From the sequence record LC597490.1: a stretch of DNA of 64,000 nucleotides; one strand, given 5' to 3'. The notes beneath the pieces are model-generated. The model searched no databases, was not told the origin of the DNA, and saw only the letters and a list, made by a program, of their open reading frames with translations. Position 1 is the first letter of the stretch, and each line of letters starts with the position of its first letter. Below are positions 24,375-36,821 of the stretch, piece after piece. The position numbers were made by a program, and so were the translations under genes.

Positions 24375-24378
24375 TAAG

Positions 24379-24408
24379 AGGGGGGCTTATTAGCTCCCCT
24401 TATTTTTT
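24379..24408 (+). terminator. intrinsic terminator
   Basis: AGGGGGGCT-TATT-AGCTCCCCT then TATTTTTT. Confidence 0.75.
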
Positions 24409-24426: not shown

Positions 24427-24714
24427 ATGAGTGAGGTAATTAAAGTATATACACCAATCTTGCCTATTGGTTCTGGACCAATATGTGAGAAAATAGAAGA
24501 TGCTATGTTTGATATCATTGAACATATTGCAGAAACTACTGATAGAAGCTTATCAGATGAAGCTGTTGAAAGATTAGCAATGAAAGTAATCAAGCAACAT
24601 GATCTTCAGAAAATAAATTTAGGTATGATTCCAATCGCTTACGAATGCCATCTTATGGTAAACTTAATGCCACGAGATGAATTTGAAGCATTGCCTGAAT
24701 TTATGGGTTACTAA
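24427..24714 (+). CDS. hypothetical protein
   Basis: ORF track; RBS AAGGAGG. Confidence 0.7.
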   Translation: MSEVIKVYTPILPIGSGPICEKIEDAMFDIIEHIAETTDRSLSDEAVERLAMKVIKQHDLQKINLGMIPIAYECHLMVNLMPRDEFEALPEFMGY

Positions 24715-24758
24715 CAAAGAAAGCAACTGGCTTAGGCAATGGCAAAGGAGGAAGTTTT

Positions 24759-25481
24759 ATGAGTCAAGAAATGATTAATTTAAGTTTGTTCTTCTTCGAA
24801 CATGTAAAAGGTATTGGTAGAGATACAGGTGGACAGATTGATGCGCCACCTACTTATAAGAAGATGGTGATGGAGGACTGCTTCAATTTACTTCAGAACA
24901 AATACACAGCTAGAATGCTCTTCTCTGCAATGAAAGATTATAAGACGCATGTAGAAGATGCTAGTCTAGTATATAAAGTGAGTGATATTGTTAAGCACTT
25001 TAAACTCGAACCTGATGGAACTGGAGTAAAAGAAGAAGTGAAAGAGAACTTGATGGAAGTTGGACGATTCTATTATCATCCTGCTTTACAAGTAACTCCG
25101 CCACCACCGACAGTTAAAGTAAATGATGATGGAACATTTCAAGCATCATATGAAGCTGATGAGTATTTCTTAGAAATGAAAAGCCACTTCACAATGGATG
25201 AGTTGCTACATTATTTCTATAATCGAACAAATGCAAAAGATACATGTCACCCAGAACGTGATAAAGGTTCATTCCGTTTCTTATTAAAGCATTGTTCGAT
25301 TGACCATATCTTATATACAATTGATGAGGCAATGGCATTAGTAGAGGATGGAGAGGCTCGTTATCCGACCAATCCATTAGACCTACAACAATATCTTCCA
25401 CACGGTAGATCATTACTGGAAGATAGAATGAATGCATGTTTCGAGGAGGGTGTTAATTATGTCAAACCAAGATATCAGTAA
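24759..25481 (+). CDS. hypothetical protein upstream of primase
   Basis: ORF track; RBS AAGGAGG; overlaps primase start. Confidence 0.75.
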   Translation: MSQEMINLSLFFFEHVKGIGRDTGGQIDAPPTYKKMVMEDCFNLLQNKYTARMLFSAMKDYKTHVEDASLVYKVSDIVKHFKLEPDGTGVKEEVKENLMEVGRFYYHPALQVTPPPPTVKVNDDGTFQASYEADEYFLEMKSHFTMDELLHYFYNRTNAKDTCHPERDKGSFRFLLKHCSIDHILYTIDEAMALVEDGEARYPTNPLDLQQYLPHGRSLLEDRMNACFEEGVNYVKPRYQ

Positions 25482-26469
25482 GTTCGTTCACATCGAAGGC
25501 GGGCGTAATCTTCCAACAGGAGGATTCGTTCGTAACGAGATGATGGATATTAGTCAGATTAAAGAGTGGAGACAAAAGAATAATAATGAAGGCTTGTATT
25601 TATCAGCTTACTTATATGACAATGTAGATGTAGCTGAAGCAAACTTATATGGAAGTTTTTATTTAGACTTCGATGCAGAAGAAGATTTCGATAAAGCACG
25701 TAAGGATGCGATATCTGTTATCTGGTATTTGAAACAACGTTTTACTTACAATATTCCAGAATCATTTATTCGCATATTCTTTAGTGGTAAGAAAGGGATT
25801 CACATTGTTATCCCAGCGAATGTATTCGGCATCGAACCACATAAGCATTTAAATGAGTTCTACAAGTTAATGGCATTAAAGATGGGTGAGCAAGCAAAGA
25901 ATGGAACACTTGATACTCGTATATATGACCGACGTCGTTTGTTCCGTGTATATAATAGTCTTCACCCTGATACAAAGTTATTTAAAATACCTCTAACATA
26001 TTTTGAGTTAACAACATTATCAGTAGAAGAAATTAAAGAGAAAGCAAAAGAGCCACAGCCGATGCGATATGAGCAGACATATGAAGTAAATCGTGCAAAG
26101 GCAGAATATGAAAAATATATGGAGCAATGGAAAATTCGTTTCGAAAAGAAATTTAGTAAGAAGAAACAGTATGAAACAAAGCCATTAGATTTCGTACCAC
26201 ATTGTATTCAGGAGTTATGGGCTTCTGGTCCAGTAAAAGGACAACGTAATGATAGTGCGGCCGCATTAACATCGTTCCTCAAGAAACAGGGGTTATCAGA
26301 GGAAGAGGCATGGAAGAACTTAGTGAAATGGAACAGAGAGTCATTGTCCAATCGTGAATTGGAAATGGTTATGAAAAGTATTTACCATAAGAACTATGAG
26401 TACGGTTGTGCCCGTTTAGAAACATTGGCAACATGTGTAAAGGAAAAATGCAAACTATATAGAAAATAA
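25459..26469 (+). CDS. archaeo-eukaryotic primase (AEP) with PriCT-1-like C-terminus
   Basis: YLDFD, FSGKKGIH, RRLFR, GQRND, WN motifs; ATG 25459 after GAGGAGG. Confidence 0.85.
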   Translation: MSNQDISKFVHIEGGRNLPTGGFVRNEMMDISQIKEWRQKNNNEGLYLSAYLYDNVDVAEANLYGSFYLDFDAEEDFDKARKDAISVIWYLKQRFTYNIPESFIRIFFSGKKGIHIVIPANVFGIEPHKHLNEFYKLMALKMGEQAKNGTLDTRIYDRRRLFRVYNSLHPDTKLFKIPLTYFELTTLSVEEIKEKAKEPQPMRYEQTYEVNRAKAEYEKYMEQWKIRFEKKFSKKKQYETKPLDFVPHCIQELWASGPVKGQRNDSAAALTSFLKKQGLSEEEAWKNLVKWNRESLSNRELEMVMKSIYHKNYEYGCARLETLATCVKEKCKLYRK

Positions 26470-26492
26470 TTGCATATTGGGGGAAGAGAGCC

Positions 26493-26651
26493 ATGGGAAA
26501 AATGTTATCACAAGAAGAGATCAATCTTGCAAAAGGGAAAATTATAAGTGAATTTGAAAAGGTATGTCCAACACCTCGTTCATTCGAACAAATGAAGAGA
26601 GAGACTCATCGTGTATTCGATGAGTTATTTAAACAAGGGAAAAGCAATTAA
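26493..26651 (+). CDS. 52-aa protein (not in ORF track)
   Basis: read by hand: MGKMLSQEEINLAKGKIISEFEKVCP...; RBS GGGGG; fills the primase-helicase gap. Confidence 0.6.
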   Translation: MGKMLSQEEINLAKGKIISEFEKVCPTPRSFEQMKRETHRVFDELFKQGKSN

Positions 26652-26666
26652 CGAGGGGGCATAATC

Positions 26667-27767
26667 GTGGCAAAACACATTTCATTAGAAGAACTATTAG
26701 CATCAGACGGAGTACCCAACTTAGAGCCACCAGAAACTGCTCAAGAGGAAGCACCAGAGGATGAACCGACCAATGTATTACAGAGACCATTCTACGTCAA
26801 TAAGATGATGAAAACGATTGAAGAGGTAAAAGAGTACTCTTGGAATCGTGGTGAAATCGGTGGTCTTGACTGGGGCTTCGAATCATTTAACAAAGCATTT
26901 GAAGGATTAAATACAGGCGTTCACTTAATAGCAGGTCAGTCCAATATTGGTAAATCTGGTATGTGTATGCAATTAGCATGGCAGATAGCACAAGCGAATA
27001 AAGTCATTGATGAGAAGCATACGAAAAAAGCATTTGTATTATACTTCTCGTTAGATGATAATAACAATGAATTACTTCCACGTTTAATCGCAATCGACCA
27101 AAGAATTCCAATCAATGCTGTTCGTTTCCCTAAAAAGTATGAGGACAATGAGCATTACATGGAACGTATGGAAATTGGTTATGAAAGATTAATAGAGTCA
27201 ACAGACTTAATTCATATGTTAGATGTTAACGAAGGTTCTAGCATTGAGTATATCGAAGCGACTACTGAAAAGTATTCATTGGAATTAGCACAACAAGATG
27301 AAGACTATCAAATCGTATTATTCATTGATAACTTCCATGATATTACGGTAGAAGATAAGTCAATTGGTAATGATGAAAGTTCGAAATACAATCACATTGC
27401 TGACTTACTAACTCGTATCGCAACGAAGTTTGATTGTCCGATTGTATGTACAGCTGAGTTCCGTAAATTAAATGGTAACAAACGTCCAAAGATAGATGAT
27501 ATTCGTGAGTCAACTAAGATTGGTTATGAAGCGAAAGCGATTCTATTATGTTATAACGAGGTTGGTCTTCGTGGTCAGCAATCTAATATTTATTGGATGC
27601 GTGATGATAAGCCTGATAAGCAACCCGTATATGAAGCTCAAGTTGGTAAGAATAAGTTTGGTTCATTCAAAGGTCGTTTATATTTTGAATTTGTACCAGA
27701 GATGTCTTATTTCCGTGAGGTTCCACCAGAAGGAGCACAACGTTATTCACAAATGGTAAGTGGTTAA
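26667..27767 (+). CDS. DnaB-like replicative helicase (C-terminal ATPase domain)
   Basis: GLDWGF, AGQSNIGKS, LYFSLD, LFIDNF, RPKIDDIRES, GKNKFG. Confidence 0.85.
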   Translation: MAKHISLEELLASDGVPNLEPPETAQEEAPEDEPTNVLQRPFYVNKMMKTIEEVKEYSWNRGEIGGLDWGFESFNKAFEGLNTGVHLIAGQSNIGKSGMCMQLAWQIAQANKVIDEKHTKKAFVLYFSLDDNNNELLPRLIAIDQRIPINAVRFPKKYEDNEHYMERMEIGYERLIESTDLIHMLDVNEGSSIEYIEATTEKYSLELAQQDEDYQIVLFIDNFHDITVEDKSIGNDESSKYNHIADLLTRIATKFDCPIVCTAEFRKLNGNKRPKIDDIRESTKIGYEAKAILLCYNEVGLRGQQSNIYWMRDDKPDKQPVYEAQVGKNKFGSFKGRLYFEFVPEMSYFREVPPEGAQRYSQMVSG

Positions 27768-27804
27768 GGGGGACAACCTCCTTAGCCCATAGGAGGTATA
27801 AGGA

Positions 27805-28587
27805 ATGGAGCAACAAGTAAGGAATTTAATTGGGAAGAAGTTTGGAATGTTAACTGTACAATCGGTTAATCGTATTACAGAGTATGGGGATGCAAGATGG
27901 AATTGTATTTGTGATTGTGGTAAGGAAACAGTGAGAGGTGGACAATACTTAACTGTTGGTAAAAACCTATCTTGTGGATGTACAAACCGAATGAACCGTA
28001 AAGAACCTATGTATAAGAGGGACTTCACAGGTTATCGTTTTGGCAACCTTACTGCAATAAAACAATTGGAACAACTAGAAGGTTCTGATTGGATGTGGGA
28101 ATGTGTATGTGATTGCGGTAATAAGAAAGTAACTAGAATTAGAAGTTTATTAAGTGGTGGAACATCTAGTTGTGGTTGTTTAAGTAGCGCAATTAAAGTA
28201 GATGAAGTTGGAAACGAGTACGGATTACTGGAAGTAATAAAAGATGCTGGTACTTTAAATGCTGGTCATGCTTCATGGTTATGCAGATGTAAGTGTGGGA
28301 AACAAATCATCTTGTCTGGTGCATATCTACGTAGAGGTTATTATGATTCATGTGGATGTACGAAAGATAAAACACATTTAACTGACCATCAAATCTACAG
28401 CTTAGTGGTATATGAATTAACAAAAGAATTCGAGCACTATTCAAAACATGGTGATGTTTCATTATGGAATCATAGCTTTAATGATTTTGCCGATTGGTCA
28501 TTGGAAACAGGTTTCGAATTAGGGAAGAGACTTGTTCCAAAGGATTCAACTGAACCATTATCATTAAACAACTACAAATGGATTTAA
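27805..28587 (+). CDS. protein with three WxCxCxCG zinc modules and degenerate HNH-like C-terminus
   Basis: repeats GKKFGMLTV..WNCICDCG..SCGC; tail SFNDFADWSLETG...NNYKW. Confidence 0.7.
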   Translation: MEQQVRNLIGKKFGMLTVQSVNRITEYGDARWNCICDCGKETVRGGQYLTVGKNLSCGCTNRMNRKEPMYKRDFTGYRFGNLTAIKQLEQLEGSDWMWECVCDCGNKKVTRIRSLLSGGTSSCGCLSSAIKVDEVGNEYGLLEVIKDAGTLNAGHASWLCRCKCGKQIILSGAYLRRGYYDSCGCTKDKTHLTDHQIYSLVVYELTKEFEHYSKHGDVSLWNHSFNDFADWSLETGFELGKRLVPKDSTEPLSLNNYKWI

Positions 28588-28597
28588 AGGAGGAAGC

Positions 28598-28831
28598 ATG
28601 ATGTATAGCCAAAAGGATATAATCAACCTATGCGAAGCTGCATATCAAGCAGGGTATATAGAAGGAGGTCGATACGGAACTTTACCTGTTGCAACAAAAG
28701 AAGCAAAGTATCACACGATTTACTTCCCTATGTATTTAGAATGGGTAAAAGTAAGAAAGGATTTAGCTGAAGACGATAAGGCAAAGACTGATTTCGGTGT
28801 TTATGCTGAACGTGAATTCGCCAACTATTAG
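28598..28831 (+). CDS. hypothetical protein
   Basis: ORF track; RBS AAGGAGG. Confidence 0.7.
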   Translation: MMYSQKDIINLCEAAYQAGYIEGGRYGTLPVATKEAKYHTIYFPMYLEWVKVRKDLAEDDKAKTDFGVYAEREFANY

Positions 28832-28842
28832 GAGGTGTTGAC

Positions 28843-28881
28843 ATGATGGATGGAGATACTATCGGAGGCGAAGAGCAATGA
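28843..28881 (+). CDS. 12-codon mini-ORF
   Basis: MMDGDTIGGEEQ after AGGAGGTG; ATGA overlap with next ORF. Confidence 0.35.
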   Translation: MMDGDTIGGEEQ

Positions 28882-29003
28882 CTGTAGCAAGGACTTATAT
28901 ATGCAAAAATAAATGTGAGCCTGAAGTCATAACTGATGCTATAACATATACACCAATATGTTATCACTGTGGAGAGTATATGGTAGAAGGCTCAGATGCT
29001 TAA
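28878..29003 (+). CDS. 41-aa zinc-finger protein (not in ORF track)
   Basis: MTVARTYICKNKC...PICYHCGEYM; RBS GGAGG. Confidence 0.6.
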   Translation: MTVARTYICKNKCEPEVITDAITYTPICYHCGEYMVEGSDA

Positions 29004-29021
29004 ATTAAGGGGTGAAGAGTA

Positions 29022-29438
29022 ATGTCTATTAAAAAGATATGGAATAAGATTGAACACGTTCCTTATCGAGGTACTGCAAGATTAATAAAGCCAGCCGTGA
29101 GATTCAAGAATTTGCATTCCAGAGAAGCATATTGTAGATATTGTGGTGGAGACATACTTTATAGTTCTTCACCCTATACATCATGGCCTGATACATACGA
29201 GGGAGTTCCTTCTATCGCATCTGGAGTTATTAGATATGCAACACATTGTAAAACCTGTGGGTTATTAAATGAACCATATGATAGGGTTTACTTCGACGCA
29301 TTAGATAGAGAAGATGGTTCTGTTATTGAAGATTTTTCAATGGATGCTGGATACGTTTTTGATAAAGCAAATTATGATGAGTACTTAGAAGAGTATAACA
29401 AAGATGGCTTTATAACATTTATTATTCGTAGACCTTAG
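29022..29438 (+). CDS. zinc-finger hypothetical protein
   Basis: CRYCG...CKTCG; RBS AAGGGG. Confidence 0.7.
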   Translation: MSIKKIWNKIEHVPYRGTARLIKPAVRFKNLHSREAYCRYCGGDILYSSSPYTSWPDTYEGVPSIASGVIRYATHCKTCGLLNEPYDRVYFDALDREDGSVIEDFSMDAGYVFDKANYDEYLEEYNKDGFITFIIRRP

Positions 29439-29454
29439 AGTAGGAGGAAGAACA

Positions 29455-30312
29455 ATGGTTGTGGGGAGAAAGATGAAAGACAGAACTGGAGAAAAGTTTG
29501 GCATGTTAACTGCTATTCGTTATGACGGGAAAGATGACCGTAACAATGTAAAGTGGCATTGTGAATGCGAATGTGGCAAAACCAAAACTGTCTTAGCAAA
29601 AGATTTAGTAAGCGGTCACACTAAAAGTTGTGGATGTATGAAAGGATCAGGCGCTAAGTTAAATAAAGACGGCGTTGGCTTTAGCACCAAAGATTTAAAA
29701 GGTCAACGTTTCGGAAAGCTAACTGTTGTTGAAATGGGAGACAGAACGATTCATGGACATTTAACTTGGAAGTGTAAGTGTGATTGTGGAACAGAAAAGT
29801 ATATTGCAGGTAAGTATCTACGAGGTGGTAATACAAAAAGTTGTGGTTGCCTAGCAAGAGAAATGTCTGCGGTTCGTGTAGCTGCAATAGCAAAGAAAAG
29901 ATTTGAAAAGGCAACTGGTAAGAAACCTGAAGACCACATTGGGGAAGCATTTAATTACTTTGTTGTTAAAGGTGTCAGCACGAAAGACAACAGAACAAGT
30001 TGGTTAGTTGAATGTGGATGTGGAGCTGAACGCAACATTATCTGTCACTCATTAACAAGTGGGAAACGACAGAGTTGTGGTTGTGTTGCCAATGCACATA
30101 ATCTAACTGACCATCAGGTTAGAAAACTAGCAATCAATTATCTTACTGCTAAATGGAAGATGGTTACTGATGCAAAACAAGGTAACGCATGGGATAACTC
30201 ATTCGATATCTTTGCAGACTGGGCTTTTGAAACTGGGTATGAGCTAGGTAAACATTTTATGCTTACGAACATTTATCGTTCTTATTCACCAGAGAATTGT
30301 TATTGGGAGTAA
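29455..30312 (+). CDS. paralog of 27805 gene: three zinc modules and degenerate HNH-like C-terminus
   Basis: GEKFGMLTA..WHCECECG..SCGC x3; tail SFDIFADWAFETG...YSPENCYW. Confidence 0.7.
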   Translation: MVVGRKMKDRTGEKFGMLTAIRYDGKDDRNNVKWHCECECGKTKTVLAKDLVSGHTKSCGCMKGSGAKLNKDGVGFSTKDLKGQRFGKLTVVEMGDRTIHGHLTWKCKCDCGTEKYIAGKYLRGGNTKSCGCLAREMSAVRVAAIAKKRFEKATGKKPEDHIGEAFNYFVVKGVSTKDNRTSWLVECGCGAERNIICHSLTSGKRQSCGCVANAHNLTDHQVRKLAINYLTAKWKMVTDAKQGNAWDNSFDIFADWAFETGYELGKHFMLTNIYRSYSPENCYWE

Positions 30313-30313
30313 C

Positions 30314-30682
30314 TTGAGAGGGGGTGACGATGTGATATCACATGGAAGTCTTCATGCGATTAAACCAAAAGATTCAACAAAAGAAATTGTGAAGCGTATT
30401 CCACTTGAAAAAGCACAAGGATATGGTCAGTACCTTTTAATTGGAAAAGACGAGCACGCTATTACACCTGTAGAAGCAACTACTAAAAGAGTAAAAGAAG
30501 TATTACAACAATGTGCAGATGAATACGGTATTTATATTTCATGTAATTATAATGAACCAGGCGGCTCTGAATGGGGAGAGAGCCGTGAAATATCTATTAC
30601 ATTTGGCAAAGTACCTTTACATGATGGGATTAAGTTGGGGACGAAACTAGGGGGATTTGAAGAGGATGAAGAAAACGCATAA
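30314..30682 (+). CDS. hypothetical protein
   Basis: ORF track; start uncertain. Confidence 0.6.
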   Translation: MRGGDDVISHGSLHAIKPKDSTKEIVKRIPLEKAQGYGQYLLIGKDEHAITPVEATTKRVKEVLQQCADEYGIYISCNYNEPGGSEWGESREISITFGKVPLHDGIKLGTKLGGFEEDEENA

Positions 30683-31025
30683 GCAAATGTTACATCTGAT
30701 TACAGCAGCTGGACTAAGCGTATCCGTTTTATCTGGTTGTTCTGGATATGATGCAGAGCAAGACCAAAAGAAAGATGATATATCACAATGTGATCCAAAA
30801 AAAGATAAGTGTGAAAAACGTGAGCGTTCTGGCGGTGGCTTCTTCTGGGTTCCGATTACTGGTAGTACAACTAGTGGCGGAACATCAGGAGCTACCTCAG
30901 GTTCTACATCTGGTGTAGTAAGCGGGGGAGGAAGTAAAGCTTCTACATCATCAGGAGCTACTTCAGGAAGCACGTCTGCGCCATCAAGCGGTATCGGTAA
31001 CGCAAAGGCTCCAGCAGGTTCTTAA
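30666..31025 (+). CDS. lipoprotein with Gly/Ser/Thr-rich tail (YgiB/YjfM-like context)
   Basis: signal peptide with lipobox LSGC, Cys pair CDPKKDKC, FFW, repeated SGxTSG tail. Confidence 0.75.
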   Translation: MKKTHKQMLHLITAAGLSVSVLSGCSGYDAEQDQKKDDISQCDPKKDKCEKRERSGGGFFWVPITGSTTSGGTSGATSGSTSGVVSGGGSKASTSSGATSGSTSAPSSGIGNAKAPAGS

Positions 31026-31053
31026 TCTGTTGGAGTACATAAGGGGGAGAAAC

Positions 31054-32274
31054 ATGTTCAATCAAGAACAATATATCAAAGAGTTCTATGAAAAGAATGA
31101 TGCGTTAGTGGAGAAGGGTTTTTCATGGGGAACACTTTATGAAAATGAAGAATGGAATCAGTATATGAGTTTAACTCCTATTCCACTTTCGGAGTTGTCT
31201 TATCAAAACATCCTGAAAGCAACAACAGAAATCGGACGAATCATCCAGAAGTATTACTGGCATGTATGGGATACACCAGAGATACTGGGACGACTAAAAC
31301 TCAACCCACACATTCTTGATGCAATTAAAGGCGGTAAAGATAATCTATTTAGTTATCTATGCAGATTTGATTTTATTATTAACGGTGATGATATTAAGTT
31401 AATTGAGATTAATGCAGATACACCAACTGGATTAGTTGAGCCAAGTATTGCGAACCGTTATTTAATAGAAGGAACTGAGTATAAACATCTCAACACACAT
31501 GAAGAATGTTTAACCAATATGTGGTCTCAGTTCATCAAGAGGTATAAGATACCTTCAGATGAATACATTTACTTCACAAGCTATGATTGGCATGATGAAG
31601 ATAGAGAGACAACTGAAATGATTATGGAACAGTGTCTGCATAAGAACAAACAATATGTGGGTGTCCAAGATTTAATGGTAAATGAAAGCGGATTATATGA
31701 TGCTTACGGCAATCCTATTAAATATTTATACCGATTATATCCGCTTGAGTATTTACTAGATGACAAGGACGATGATGGTCGTCCAATTGGTCGATGGTTA
31801 TTGAAACATATTGCAGATGGAAAAGTCATTATGCTGAATCCACCATCTTCTATCATTCCACAACATAAAGGATTCTTAGCTTTATTATGGGATGAATACG
31901 AGAAAGGTAAATTATTTACGGCAGAAGAGAAAGAAATTATCCGTAAGTATTTCTTACCAACTTACTTCACACCAGGGTTATTAAAAGATTATGTAGAGAA
32001 ACCAATCTTTGGTCGTGAAGGTGGCGGCGTTCGTATTGTAACAAAAGAAGTACAGGAAGAAGACAATACAGAATACTACCGCAATCAAGATATGATTTAC
32101 CAACAGTATGTAGATATGCCGAAACAAGTCATTGATACATGGGATGGCCCGTATGAAGGACGACTACTTGTAGGCTCACATCTTATTGGTGGAAAACCAG
32201 CAGGTATATTCTATCGTATTGGAGAACCAATCACAGGTAACTTATCAATGTTCGCACCAGTAGGAATTAAATAG
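31054..32274 (+). CDS. glutathionylspermidine synthase-like ATP-grasp ligase (YgiC/YjfC-like)
   Basis: RFD, EINADTPT, EDRET, LYRLYPLE, NPP, KGFLALLW, KPIFGREG, IYQQY. Confidence 0.88.
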   Translation: MFNQEQYIKEFYEKNDALVEKGFSWGTLYENEEWNQYMSLTPIPLSELSYQNILKATTEIGRIIQKYYWHVWDTPEILGRLKLNPHILDAIKGGKDNLFSYLCRFDFIINGDDIKLIEINADTPTGLVEPSIANRYLIEGTEYKHLNTHEECLTNMWSQFIKRYKIPSDEYIYFTSYDWHDEDRETTEMIMEQCLHKNKQYVGVQDLMVNESGLYDAYGNPIKYLYRLYPLEYLLDDKDDDGRPIGRWLLKHIADGKVIMLNPPSSIIPQHKGFLALLWDEYEKGKLFTAEEKEIIRKYFLPTYFTPGLLKDYVEKPIFGREGGGVRIVTKEVQEEDNTEYYRNQDMIYQQYVDMPKQVIDTWDGPYEGRLLVGSHLIGGKPAGIFYRIGEPITGNLSMFAPVGIK

Positions 32275-32287
32275 GGGGAAGAAAGCC

Positions 32288-33013
32288 ATGGTTATTAACT
32301 TAGAAAAAGCAACGAAGGATGTAAAGATTGTTTTAGAAAAGAAGGAGATTTTCGGAGAGAAAGCGAATATTAAAGTAGTAGTAGACCACTCAGGTTCTAC
32401 TGGAGATTTATTTAGACATGGTGTAGTTCAAGCAACACTAGAGCGTATTCTAGCTGTTGGTCTTAACATGGACTCAAACCAGTCTATCGAAGTGTATGCT
32501 TTCAATGGAAATGTAACATACATCGGAGAAGCAAATGAAAATAATATCGAGAACTTTACGAAAGACGTCTTCCTGAAGAAAGTACGTGTTGAAGGTGGTA
32601 CTCGATATTCACCAGCTATGCAAGCCGTTGTAAAAGATGTAGAGGCGGAACCGAAGCCTCAAGGATTCTTTTCTAAGTTGCTAGGAAAGAAAGAAGCTCC
32701 TGTCATTGATAAGGACTTGCCTACATTCGTTTTCTTTATTACTGATGGTGACAACTCTGATAAGAACATCACAGAGTCTTACATTAAAGAGATTTCAACC
32801 AAACCAATCTTCTGGCAGTTTATCGGAATTGGTTATAGCAGCATGGCATTCCTAGACAAGCTGGATAAGATGGAAGGTCGTACTGTAGACAATGCAAACT
32901 TCATCCGTGCAAAGAATATTCAAGATATGACTAACTCAGAACTATACGAAGAAATTTTAAATGAATATCCATTATGGTTGAAGGAAGCTCGTAAGCTGAA
33001 AATCACAAAATAA
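32288..33013 (+). CDS. vWA domain protein of the TerF-C-terminal type
   Basis: MIDAS DHSGS, GGTRY, FFITDG, PIFWQFIGIG, GRTVDNANF. Confidence 0.85.
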   Translation: MVINLEKATKDVKIVLEKKEIFGEKANIKVVVDHSGSTGDLFRHGVVQATLERILAVGLNMDSNQSIEVYAFNGNVTYIGEANENNIENFTKDVFLKKVRVEGGTRYSPAMQAVVKDVEAEPKPQGFFSKLLGKKEAPVIDKDLPTFVFFITDGDNSDKNITESYIKEISTKPIFWQFIGIGYSSMAFLDKLDKMEGRTVDNANFIRAKNIQDMTNSELYEEILNEYPLWLKEARKLKITK

Positions 33014-33021
33014 TTGGGGGC

Positions 33022-33378
33022 ATGTTCATGTTTAAAAGTTTAGAATGCGTATCCGTACCCGTTACAGATTTAGAGAAAGCTTTTGATTTCTATGTATCAA
33101 TGGGATTAGAAGAGTCATGGCGTATTGAACGAGAAGGTGGAGCAGTTCTTGTTGGATTAAAATTCCCAAATAAGAAAAGCTCTGAACTCGTTTTAAATTA
33201 CAAGGGTGCTGTTCCAGAAATGGAAGTCGAGATTGCTGTTGGTAGTGTCCATCATACAGTGAAGAAACTGAAAAAGAATCCTGATGTAAAAATCATCGTA
33301 GAGCCTTTCGAAACAGAATCAGGCAATGTTGCAGTATTCGAAGCACCAGATGGTAACGTATATGTAATTGTAGATTAA
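33022..33378 (+). CDS. VOC (glyoxalase/bleomycin-resistance) family protein
   Basis: VSVPVTDLEKAFDFY..GL; FEAPDGN. Confidence 0.85.
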   Translation: MFMFKSLECVSVPVTDLEKAFDFYVSMGLEESWRIEREGGAVLVGLKFPNKKSSELVLNYKGAVPEMEVEIAVGSVHHTVKKLKKNPDVKIIVEPFETESGNVAVFEAPDGNVYVIVD

Positions 33379-33397
33379 GTTGCAAGGGGGAGTATAT

Positions 33398-33709
33398 ATG
33401 TCACCACGAGTATATGAAATTAAGCCAGGGGAAAGAATCAAAGCAAAAACGTACGTAGATGTACCAGATAAAGATACGTACAAAAAACGTACAGTCATAG
33501 ATGGAGTAGAGTATCTTGGTGCTTATGAGGTTTTTGAGAGAAGACTTTCAAAATTCATTCATGACTTCGAAAAAGAATTTGGATTAGAAGTTGATGCAAC
33601 TCTAAACCATTCTTATTACTCTAATGTTCATCACCAAAAGATTGTGTTGAACTGTAAAGAGTTGGTGCCAGAAGGTTCATTCGTTGTAATGAAACAAGAA
33701 GAGAAATAA
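33398..33709 (+). CDS. hypothetical protein
   Basis: ATG 33398 after GGGGGAG. Confidence 0.65.
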   Translation: MSPRVYEIKPGERIKAKTYVDVPDKDTYKKRTVIDGVEYLGAYEVFERRLSKFIHDFEKEFGLEVDATLNHSYYSNVHHQKIVLNCKELVPEGSFVVMKQEEK

Positions 33710-33723
33710 GGGGACAAGGGAAT

Positions 33724-34317
33724 ATGGAGAGAACGGTTGATAAAGAAATAAGACCATTCCTCAAAGAGCATCTTCATACTTTGTATGGGGATGTTCCTAT
33801 TTATGAGGAGTTAGCTATTGCATATCATAGTACAGTTGTAGATATGGTGGTATTAGCACAAGGGGAATTGATTGGGCTTGAGATCAAAAGTGGGAAAGAC
33901 AATTTACGCCGACTTCCAACTCAGATTAAAAACTATGATAAAGTGTTTTCACGTAACTACATTGTCGTAGATGACAATCATTTGGAGAAGGTAGAGAGAA
34001 TGGTTCCGCATTACTGGGGTATCATCCTTGCTTATCATGATGGTACAGGTGATGTATTCATTGAACTCTATCGTGATGCAGAAGAGAATCCGAATCAAGA
34101 TGCATACTGGGTTCTTGAGTTATTATGGAGAGAAGAATTAACATATTTGATGAAGAAGCATGAGATATATCGTGGTATGTCAAAAGCTAGAATGGTAGAG
34201 AGGCGTCGTAAATTATTGCTTCATCTATCATTATATGATACTGTACAAGAAGTCATTCATTTATTACCGCAACGAGATGGATGGAAAAGCAACAAAGAGG
34301 AGGAAGTAGAAGTATGA
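33724..34317 (+). CDS. sce7726-like PD-(D/E)XK nuclease-fold protein
   Basis: YEEL, VVDMVV, GLEIKSGKDNLRRLPTQ..NY..VF, WGII, LLWREEL. Confidence 0.75.
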   Translation: MERTVDKEIRPFLKEHLHTLYGDVPIYEELAIAYHSTVVDMVVLAQGELIGLEIKSGKDNLRRLPTQIKNYDKVFSRNYIVVDDNHLEKVERMVPHYWGIILAYHDGTGDVFIELYRDAEENPNQDAYWVLELLWREELTYLMKKHEIYRGMSKARMVERRRKLLLHLSLYDTVQEVIHLLPQRDGWKSNKEEEVEV

Positions 34318-34850
34318 ATACAGAGACAAAGAAATTAGCACGTAAGTTATTAGAGGCAAATGGTGTGAAAGGTTTAGAAGCATTAGCAAAAGAACCAGCC
34401 ATGATGACATGGATTGAAACATCATTAGCTCGTATTGCTGAAGCTCATCAGAACTATACGTATTTTGAAAAGGTTCAGATGACTGCCGAAACATTTGTTA
34501 AGCTCGTAGAAACATTCCATTCAGAGTATATGGAACAAGATGAGTATACAGAAGAGTTTGGAAAAGAGTTCTTCTATTTAATTGGTCACTTATTAAATGA
34601 AGAGATTCCTACTCGTTTAGAATATGTAGATGTTAACGAGTTGACTCCAATGATTAATGATATTTTAGCGGAGCAAACATTCACGACACCAGAAGTAAAA
34701 CGTGTTCCAATTAAGTTAGATGACGAACAAAAACTTCAGTTAGAAGATTTAGAGGCTGCTGGTGTTTTAGACATTATTGCGGAACGCAATGTCTTACGAG
34801 TTCAAGTAAATGCATATGAAAAACGATTAAAAGAATTAGGTGAAATATAA
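34314..34850 (+). CDS. hypothetical protein
   Basis: ATG 34314 after GAGGAGG; ATGA overlap. Confidence 0.7.
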   Translation: MNTETKKLARKLLEANGVKGLEALAKEPAMMTWIETSLARIAEAHQNYTYFEKVQMTAETFVKLVETFHSEYMEQDEYTEEFGKEFFYLIGHLLNEEIPTRLEYVDVNELTPMINDILAEQTFTTPEVKRVPIKLDDEQKLQLEDLEAAGVLDIIAERNVLRVQVNAYEKRLKELGEI

Positions 34851-34874
34851 GAGGGCTTCGGCTCTCTTTTTTTT
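34849..34874 (+). terminator. intrinsic terminator
   Basis: AAGAGGGC-TTCG-GCTCTCTT then T-run. Confidence 0.9.
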
Positions 34875-36218: not shown

Positions 36219-36821
36219 TTACAAGTTACGTGGCAAGGATTGTCGTGCGTGGTGTGGTAATCCCTTCTCTAAATTGTCTAAATGTACATCGTGTAAGTGG
36301 CGTAAAGCCAACTGGATTACCACGATAGACAATATGATTTGTAAAACAAATGCGATGATAGTGTAGTAATCAAATGGAGTAGTATGCTGGTGTATCCCCA
36401 GCCAACTGAAGATTGGTAATGTCATAGCTAACGTTCTAATAGAAAAAGAGAATACGATTACACAATAGAGGATGTGCATAGAAGATTGTAAGTGCTTCTC
36501 TAAATAACGGTAACACCAGACTGCACTGAAGAGATACAAACTATTTATAACCATTAGACTCAGAAATGTATAGTCCTGAACCACATTTTTTTCAAAAAAG
36601 AATGTGACGATTGTCCAAAGTAAAGCCAGAGGAAAGCTAATTGCATATCCTCCAACTAAAACTGCGAATAAAGCGGGGATTGCGGCAATGTCTATCATTC
36701 TGGAATCTGACAGTGGGATGTACCCTAATCTTGTACCTGCTAAGATAAGTACAGGTAATGAAAAGAAAATGCCTACTAATAATCTACTTTTTAACATACA
36801 CATTCTGCTATGGTGTTTCAT
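36219..36821 (-). CDS. multi-TM membrane protein resembling an ECF transporter S component
   Basis: about 6 hydrophobic segments; TRLGYIPL...IAAIPALFAVLVGG pattern. Confidence 0.6.
   Translation of the reverse strand: MKHHSRMCMLKSRLLVGIFFSLPVLILAGTRLGYIPLSDSRMIDIAAIPALFAVLVGGYAISFPLALLWTIVTFFFEKNVVQDYTFLSLMVINSLYLFSAVWCYRYLEKHLQSSMHILYCVIVFSFSIRTLAMTLPIFSWLGIHQHTTPFDYYTIIAFVLQIILSIVVIQLALRHLHDVHLDNLEKGLPHHARQSLPRNL

Follow-up and report, generated by a model that had tools for sequence, protein, structure and literature searches.

Glutathionylspermidine synthase (GspS) activates the C-terminal glycine carboxylate of glutathione and joins it to spermidine. Two related enzymes of Escherichia coli, YgiC and YjfC, are described in two reports as peptide-spermidine ligases and not as glutathionylspermidine synthases, with a natural substrate that is given there as unknown (PMC11762307, PMC12568646). 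In E. coli and Salmonella, the genes of these ligases follow those of the lipoproteins YgiB and YjfM, respectively, and PspA-linked neighbourhoods with DUF350 and K+ channel partners have been described (PMC11237479). In phages, a cluster of hss and gss genes has been published as a pathway for the synthesis of glutathionyl-homospermidine, the lipoprotein not being discussed there (PMC9992855). Here, we analyzed a stretch of 64,000 nucleotides (the window; positions 1-64000 of LC597490.1) from the 229.8-kb genome of the Bacillus cereus phage vB_BceM_WH1 (WH1), in which the lipoprotein gene gp057 is directly followed by gp058, encoding a YgiC/YjfC-type ligase, and by two further genes, gp059 and gp060, encoding a vWA and a VOC protein, respectively. 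On gene order and sequence comparison, gp057-gp058 is a conserved two-gene unit which we regard as the counterpart of YgiB-YgiC and YjfM-YjfC in Bacillota and in phages. Comparative genomics had already revealed this dyad, of which the WH1 pair is a phage-borne member; what is new is the conservation of the C-terminal end of the lipoprotein. The WH1 lineage keeps its own diverged version of this pair, with a lipoprotein of about 120 residues that carries the host-type C-terminal 12-mer.

A lipoprotein-ligase pair in bacteria and large phages

The ligase gp058 matches the Pfam family GSP_synth (PF03738) over almost the entire profile (positions 3-369 of 371; E 5e-58, 197.5 bits at a cut-off of 29.3), and its closest relatives of solved structure in the PDB are, by sequence, YjfC (E 1.9e-17) and YgiC (E 2e-15). 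Similarly, a Foldseek search with an AlphaFold2 model of the protein (predicted local distance difference test score 91.9) yielded YjfC (7uk6) as the best match, with an E-value of 6.5e-25 and template modelling (TM) scores of 0.75/0.78, and TM scores of 0.73-0.81 were obtained for 7uk8 and 7uka; next after YjfC/YgiC came GspS, with its synthetase domain, and trypanothione synthetase. All 24 residues that are invariant in an alignment of 12 family members from different phyla are present in gp058, among them R104, D106, E118, N120, D122, K316, R321 and E322, and the motifs RFD, EINAD and KP..GREG, which an initial annotation of this DNA had already found to be retained, all fall within this set. 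The sequence identity amounts to about 50% with ligases of the B. cereus group and to 21-27% with YgiC and YjfC. As a bifunctional GspS, gp058 failed the test against the NCBIfam equivalog model NF007801 (42.2 bits versus a cut-off of 882), and the match covers only profile positions 255-575, with no N-terminal amidase domain. Bacillus uses bacillithiol rather than glutathione, and a classical glutathione product is thus unlikely there; to our knowledge, Bacillus hosts lack glutathione. The name 'glutathionylspermidine synthase', under which such genes are usually annotated, is probably wrong in hosts without glutathione. That the E. coli ligases YgiC and YjfC do not make glutathionylspermidine had been stated in the initial annotation as well, and PMC11762307 agrees with this.

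In the putative lipoprotein gp057, a signal peptide of 25 residues (hydropathy maximum of 1.85 over 15 residues) with the lipobox LSGC is followed by a stretch of acidic and basic residues with two cysteines, by a Gly-aromatic motif and by a tail of 53 residues, 38 of which are serine, glycine or threonine. One stretch of nine residues is present twice in this tail, and no tandem repeat was found in the DNA coding for it; lipobox and repetitive, Ser/Gly-rich tail are hence as they had been perceived from the sequence at the outset. No Pfam family was matched by gp057. Direct membership in the Pfam family DUF1190 (PF06693), that of YgiB and YjfM, was rejected, as gp057 did not match this model even at an E-value of 10. 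The scores of the partner lipoproteins of B. yunxiaonensis (E 0.055), phage phiRSL1 (E 0.02) and phage Motura (E 4.9e-4) are all under the Pfam cut-off, too. In profile-profile comparisons by hhalign, the phage-type lipoproteins aligned with those of the B. cereus type (probability 94.5%, E 8e-8), and E-values against DUF1190 were 1.1e-4 for the alkaliphile type, 4.5e-3 for the B. cereus type and 0.14 for the phage type directly, reversed-sequence controls ranging from 0.04 to 0.45. The alignment of Bacillota-type lipoproteins with DUF1190 lies in the region of the Gly-aromatic motif. When Salmonella YgiB was used as query, all proteins obtained were close relatives from enterobacteria (at least 83% identity), so that no diverse DUF1190 profile could be built. 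As the profile link between gp057 and DUF1190 runs only through intermediates, we refer to gp057 as DUF1190-like from its architecture and context and not as a member of the Pfam family: it shares the lipobox, the Cys-containing stretch, the fixed C-terminal end and the position of its gene directly upstream of a YgiC-type ligase.

To survey the pair beyond WH1, the gene upstream of the ligase was read by script at 92 ligase loci. This yielded 88 lipoproteins, and a small lipoprotein gene is located directly upstream of the ligase at at least 83 of the loci. The loci with the pair stem from Bacillus, Paenibacillus, alkaliphilic bacilli and Proteobacteria as well as from large phages of at least five unrelated lineages (FADO-type phages, phiRSL1, Motura, IMG/VR contigs and large metagenome contigs). 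Several unrelated large phages therefore carry the whole pair and not merely a 'glutathionylspermidine synthase'. In the FADO-type phages of B. subtilis, the small lipoprotein and the ligase (45% identical to gp058) are followed by a PghP-like hydrolase, and the order in phage Motura is homospermidine synthase gene, lipoprotein, ligase. In alkaliphilic bacilli, the operon comprises lipoprotein, ligase, DUF350, a second ligase and a K+ channel, and short versions of the lipoprotein are also found on chromosomes of Paenibacillus. As a separate observation, the product of the gene before gsp in phage DSS3_VP1 (L105:951-1937) resembles a K+ channel and has the filter motif TVGYGD, which echoes the channel of bacterial yjf-type operons.

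The C-terminal end of the lipoprotein as candidate substrate

The C-terminal ends of the partner lipoproteins are either GG or, for the B. cereus group and the phages of this group, SGIGNAKAPAGS (AGS type). Of the 88 lipoproteins from the survey and the one encoded in the window, 84 have an ending of the GG (51) or the AGS type (33), and in the latter the last 11 positions are conserved to 94-100% (32 unique sequences); variants of the AGS-type ending occur on two large metagenome contigs. Exactly two cysteines follow the lipobox cysteine in 79 of 81 unique partner lipoproteins, most of which also have the Gly-aromatic motif and a low-complexity tail. At its end, the WH1 lipoprotein has 12 residues that equal, or nearly equal, those of chromosomal and plasmid-borne partners in the B. 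cereus group. Outside this end, the proteins differ, and the phage version is 80 residues shorter. While the peptide is kept between phage and host, eight to nine of the 12 codons differ, all of them synonymously, indicating that selection acts on the peptide; a recent transfer as the cause of the identical tail was rejected for the same reason. The C-terminal end of the lipoprotein is thus fixed from Proteobacteria through Bacillota to phages, and selection has held it through many silent codon changes. The Ser/Thr/Gly tail had initially been considered as a possible target of the ligase; the pattern of conservation rather favours the extreme C-terminal end and not the side chains.

As GspS joins the carboxylate of a C-terminal glycine of a peptide to spermidine, the fixed end of the lipoprotein suggests itself as the substrate of the ligase. 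In the mechanism that we propose, the cytoplasmic ligase would activate a peptidyl carboxylate to an acyl phosphate, which would then be joined to an amine, for which a polyamine such as spermidine is the likeliest candidate. The carboxylate would most likely be the alpha-carboxylate of the co-encoded lipoprotein, at its invariant C-terminal end. The initial annotation had assumed ligation onto a target at the cell surface. However, none of the ligase, vWA and VOC proteins was found to have a signal peptide, which excludes an ATP-dependent ligation at the cell surface. A membrane helix that places the tail of the lipoprotein in the cytoplasm was also considered and was rejected for the phage protein, as its motif GGGFFWVPITG is too short and too polar (19-residue hydropathy maximum of 0.34); the host lipoproteins reach values of up to 1.48, which is borderline for a membrane helix. 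With a ligase lacking a signal peptide and a mature phage lipoprotein lacking a membrane helix, the modification would have to precede export, that is, the exit of the unfolded protein through Sec and its lipidation, as a disordered tail would permit. The reaction would yield a disordered Ser/Gly tether that is anchored by its lipid to the outer face of the membrane and ends in an amidated, cationic tip. In bacterial cells, the dyad travels with envelope-stress genes (PspA, DUF350, K+ channel). The phage copy probably serves to adjust the envelope of the infected cell, be it for stress tolerance until lysis or for the exclusion of other phages, and the vWA and VOC proteins would act separately from the pair. 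The homospermidine synthase gene in front of the Motura pair provides a link to polyamines which we count in favour of this mechanism. All in all, we assign a probability of about 0.45, slightly short of even, to the reading that the cytoplasmic ligase amidates the C-terminal carboxylate of the lipoprotein with a polyamine prior to export and that the pair thereby alters the envelope of the infected cell.

Several observations weigh against this reading. The predicted topology is awkward, as the ligase lacks a signal peptide and the mature lipoprotein a membrane helix. The WH1 annotation contains no polyamine biosynthesis gene. The AGS tail tracks the host group and not the ligase tree, so that the binding partner of the tail may be a host component and not the ligase. 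A search for ligase residues that vary with the type of tail (AGS versus GG) gave no signal: the WH1 and B. cereus clades have five discriminating columns in common, compared to zero to six for other pairs of clades. Finally, Aeromonas T4-like phages and DSS3_VP1 possess the ligase without a lipoprotein directly upstream.

The latter two findings also speak for a different product. The ligase might join, for example, a small peptide or thiol to spermidine and thereby shift the pool of free polyamines in the infected cell, with the lipoprotein serving as partner or sensor. Such a soluble polyamine conjugate is a serious rival. It avoids the topology problem, and phages encode many enzymes of polyamine metabolism, the hss-gss clusters having been read in this way (PMC9992855). 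It leaves unexplained, however, that the lipoprotein next to the ligase has its extreme C-terminal residues fixed across phyla, and the classical product with glutathione is, as outlined above, unlikely in Bacillus. We thus rate this explanation as unlikely on balance.

The reduced size of the phage lipoprotein allows another explanation. Compared to host proteins of about 200 aa, it comprises 119 aa, lacks a hydrophobic segment of 13 residues and still has the same last 12 residues; it might therefore be a mimic with the tail end of the host protein and no middle part, which competes with or replaces the host protein and, modified or not, might block a step at the cell surface, for instance the entry of another phage. 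Exclusion of other phages by phage lipoproteins has precedents in Llp of T5 and Ltp of TP-J34. On the other hand, the phage retains a ligase of its own, which favours a working pair over a decoy, and short lipoproteins are also found on Paenibacillus chromosomes, so that we consider a mimic quite improbable.

With respect to the replication genes nearby, it may also be asked whether the ligase attaches an amino acid or polyamine to phage DNA or to a nucleotide precursor. Thymidines modified with polyamines or amino acids exist in some phages, and the genes under study share their block with primase and DnaB. Yet, in cells and phages alike, the ligase has an exported lipoprotein as its conserved partner, the closest enzymes use peptide carboxylates, and the WH1 annotation lists an ordinary thymidylate synthase, dihydrofolate reductase and dUTPase and no hydroxymethylase/kinase set. 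A role in DNA modification hence appears extremely improbable.

Returning to amidation of the lipoprotein end as the preferred reading, the fixed end would be a concrete and checkable candidate for what YgiC and YjfC of E. coli use as their natural substrate, which a recent review gives as unknown (PMC11762307). It might even be speculated that DUF1190-type lipoproteins in general are the physiological substrates of YgiC/YjfC-type ligases, through C-terminal polyamine amidation prior to export, and that large phages captured the pair for envelope remodelling in at least five unrelated lineages; this wider proposal we regard as possible and rather doubtful. The gain from the analysis lies in a better annotation and in a testable idea on protein modification, and nothing points to a new kind of system.

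The vWA and VOC genes and the surrounding block

The four genes gp057 to gp060 are intact, co-oriented open reading frames (Table 1), and a GGGGG-type ribosome-binding site precedes each of the four ATG codons at a distance of 7-11 nt; for gp060, an alternative ATG is located at 33022. The tight packing and the ribosome-binding sites noted initially were thus confirmed. Phage Edson has the same genes, with 85% identity to WH1 over this region. The four genes belong to a co-directional block of 18 genes (24427-34850) in which no gap exceeds 46 nt and at both ends of which terminator-like hairpins are predicted. As the whole block is equally close-packed, the packing is not specific to gp057-gp060. 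The preceding gene, gp056, had no match in Pfam, PHROG or PADLOC, and the idea that gp056 and gp061 are paralogs flanking the cluster was rejected (BLASTP E 0.59).

Table 1. Features of the gp057-gp058 locus and its surroundings (positions in the window).
Feature	Position	Strand	Remarks
Terminator-like hairpin	24378-24401		Upstream of the 18-gene block
gp056, small protein	30332..30682	+	Function unassigned; overlaps the start of gp057 by 17 nt
gp057, small DUF1190-like lipoprotein, 119 aa	30666..31025	+	Open reading frame and annotation; partner of the ligase
gp057 signal peptide with lipobox LSGC	30666..30740	+	Predicted lipidated Cys is residue 25; from sequence reading
gp057 cysteine pair C42, C49	30789..30812	+	In acidic/basic stretch
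gp057 Gly-aromatic motif GGGFFWVPITG	30831..30863	+	Counterpart in host proteins and YgiB: short hydrophobic segment
gp057 conserved C-terminal 12-mer	30987..31022	+	Proposed substrate end for the ligase
gp058, YgiC/YjfC-type ATP-grasp acid-amine ligase, 406 aa	31054..32274	+	Predicted cytoplasmic
gp059, stand-alone vWA-TerF-like protein	32288..33013	+	Intact MIDAS; independent accessory gene
gp060, single-domain VOC protein (glyoxalase/bleomycin-resistance fold)	33028..33378	+	Independent accessory gene
Terminator-like hairpin with T-run	34849..34868	+	End of the 18-gene block

The vWA protein gp059 belongs to the Pfam family vWA-TerF-like (PF10138; E 1e-53, 182.9 bits) and to phrog_5359. Its metal ion-dependent adhesion site (MIDAS), described as intact from the beginning, consists of D33, S35, S37, T105 and D153, all of which are invariant in 19 diverse relatives. 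The initial annotation had further named Ter stress and anti-phage neighbourhoods as the setting of TerF-type vWA proteins. However, when the whole WH1 genome was searched by tblastn with phage TerD, TerC and TelA proteins, the best E-value was 0.08, and none of gp057 to gp060 matched a family among the PADLOC models at E 0.01 or below, so that a role of the vWA protein within a Ter or defence system was rejected for WH1. The vWA gene is present in 311 phage records, the only Bacillus phage records among them being WH1 and Edson; elsewhere, it resides in phage Ter clusters or, on Bacillus phage-like contigs, alone among small early genes, the ligase being absent. On such contigs, the stand-alone vWA-TerF-like gene adjoins an Apyc1-type (anti-Pycsar) gene or is located near a Tad2-like gene (L108:4249-4965, L107:3209-3481), which hints at a place of this gene among counter-defence genes.

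The VOC protein gp060 matches the Pfam family Glyoxalase (PF00903) with 30.2 bits at a cut-off of 20.6, and its sequence matches in the PDB are weak (best E 0.025). Homologs with 57-58% identity occur in Tsamsavirus-type phages of the B. cereus group, where the neighbouring genes are unrelated and neither ligase nor vWA gene is located nearby. To determine whether vWA and VOC genes accompany the ligase in bacteria, 80 bacterial loci were fetched with the ligase alignment and searched by tblastn with the WH1 proteins at E 1e-3: neither gene was found within 5 kb of the ligase at any of the 80 loci, and neither was found in FADO-type phages. The adjacency of ligase, vWA and VOC is restricted to WH1 and Edson. 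In a third relative, the 229-kb metagenome contig L011 (ligase 74% identical), lipoprotein and ligase are followed by a gp056-like gene and then by vWA, and VOC is absent.

These data bear on the original idea of a dedicated system in which the vWA and VOC proteins work together with ligase and lipoprotein. Its appeal lies in the adjacency and predicted co-transcription of the four genes in WH1 and Edson, and in the vWA gene near the ligase in L011. Against it stand the failure to find either gene near the ligase at the 80 bacterial loci or in FADO-type phages, the missing VOC and the extra gene between ligase and vWA in L011, the occurrence of vWA and VOC in phages without the ligase, and the equally tight packing of the entire 18-gene block. 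Judged by this distribution, vWA and VOC are unrelated accessory genes and there is no four-gene system; the four-gene module was rejected, joint action of all four proteins being very improbable. Of the co-occurrence expected initially, the linkage of lipoprotein and ligase held, and that of vWA and VOC to the ligase did not.

Several other features were recorded in and around the block. The paralogous proteins gp051 (27805-28587) and gp055 (29455-30312) are Cys-rich repeat proteins and have their C-terminal part in common; gp055 matches phrog_374 (HNH endonuclease; E 1e-56) and no Pfam family, and related copies exist in Edson and in L011 (4982-5593). For the product of gp062 (33724-34317), matches were obtained to phrog_984 (E 1e-37) and, among the PADLOC models, to PDLC02989 'cll' (E 1e-17). 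Its counterpart in L011 has the Pfam domain Phage_P4_cII, and its identity of 98-99% among the three related phages is far above the conservation of its neighbours. On the minus strand, an open reading frame for 200 aa (36219-36821) lies in a gap of the WH1 annotation between the amidase gene gp065 and gp066, and its counterpart is annotated in Edson (L002:12673-13275). In L011 (131-2105), a LAGLIDADG-type open reading frame is located directly 5' of a shortened DnaB_C gene, at a place where WH1 has a single DnaB of 366 aa. Elsewhere in the WH1 genome, the annotation divides DNA polymerase III alpha into three coding sequences (194353-198551; L100:30353-34551) with gaps of about 700 and 400 nt, suggesting intervening elements, and the final gene (229026-229796; L101:16026-16796) bears the depositors' label 'enterotoxin'.

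Comparison with known systems

For the vWA protein, the Ter clusters of bacteria and phages are the closest known setting, as gp059 is a full-length vWA-TerF-like protein with an intact MIDAS like the TerF-type vWA proteins. In phi92, FBKp34 and CcrBL9, the vWA gene lies beside TerD, TerC or TelA, of which the WH1 genome has none.

E. coli GspS and trypanothione synthetase share the fold of their synthetase domain with gp058 (Foldseek E about 1e-20, TM 0.7), and the chemistry proposed here, the joining of a carboxylate to a polyamine, is theirs. In contrast, the N-terminal amidase domain of GspS is missing from gp058, which also scores far below the equivalog cut-off. RimK and tubulin-tyrosine ligase are ATP-grasp enzymes that extend the C-terminus of proteins. 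They act, as proposed for gp058, on the C-terminal carboxylate of a specific protein; this likeness is one of working only, as both belong to other ATP-grasp subfamilies and add amino acids, not polyamines.

The gsp genes of phiRSL1 and Motura resemble the WH1 pair in being phage-borne ligase genes behind a small lipoprotein, which in their case ends in GG. Their lipoproteins are nearer to DUF1190 than that of WH1, and Motura adds the homospermidine synthase gene. Among the closest known systems are also YgiB-YgiC and YjfM-YjfC of E. coli and Salmonella. Compared to YgiB and YjfM, the phage lipoprotein is half the size, does not match the Pfam model of DUF1190, ends in AGS instead of GG, and stems from a virus of a Gram-positive host that has no outer membrane. 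Nevertheless, the order of lipoprotein and ligase is the same, and YgiC and YjfC have the ligase fold and the invariant residues in common with gp058. Salmonella YgiB and YjfM, which end in GG, display the lipobox, the Cys stretch, the Gly-aromatic/hydrophobic motif and the low-complexity tail of the Bacillota and phage partners, including a Gly-aromatic-Gly motif near the fixed C-terminal end, and the E. coli yjf operon has DUF350 and K+ channel partners, as do the operons of alkaliphilic bacilli. The initial view of YgiB-YgiC and YjfM-YjfC as analogous pairs was thus borne out and, given the same order, lipoprotein architecture and operon partners, the relation of gp057-gp058 to them looks like homology, beyond mere analogy.

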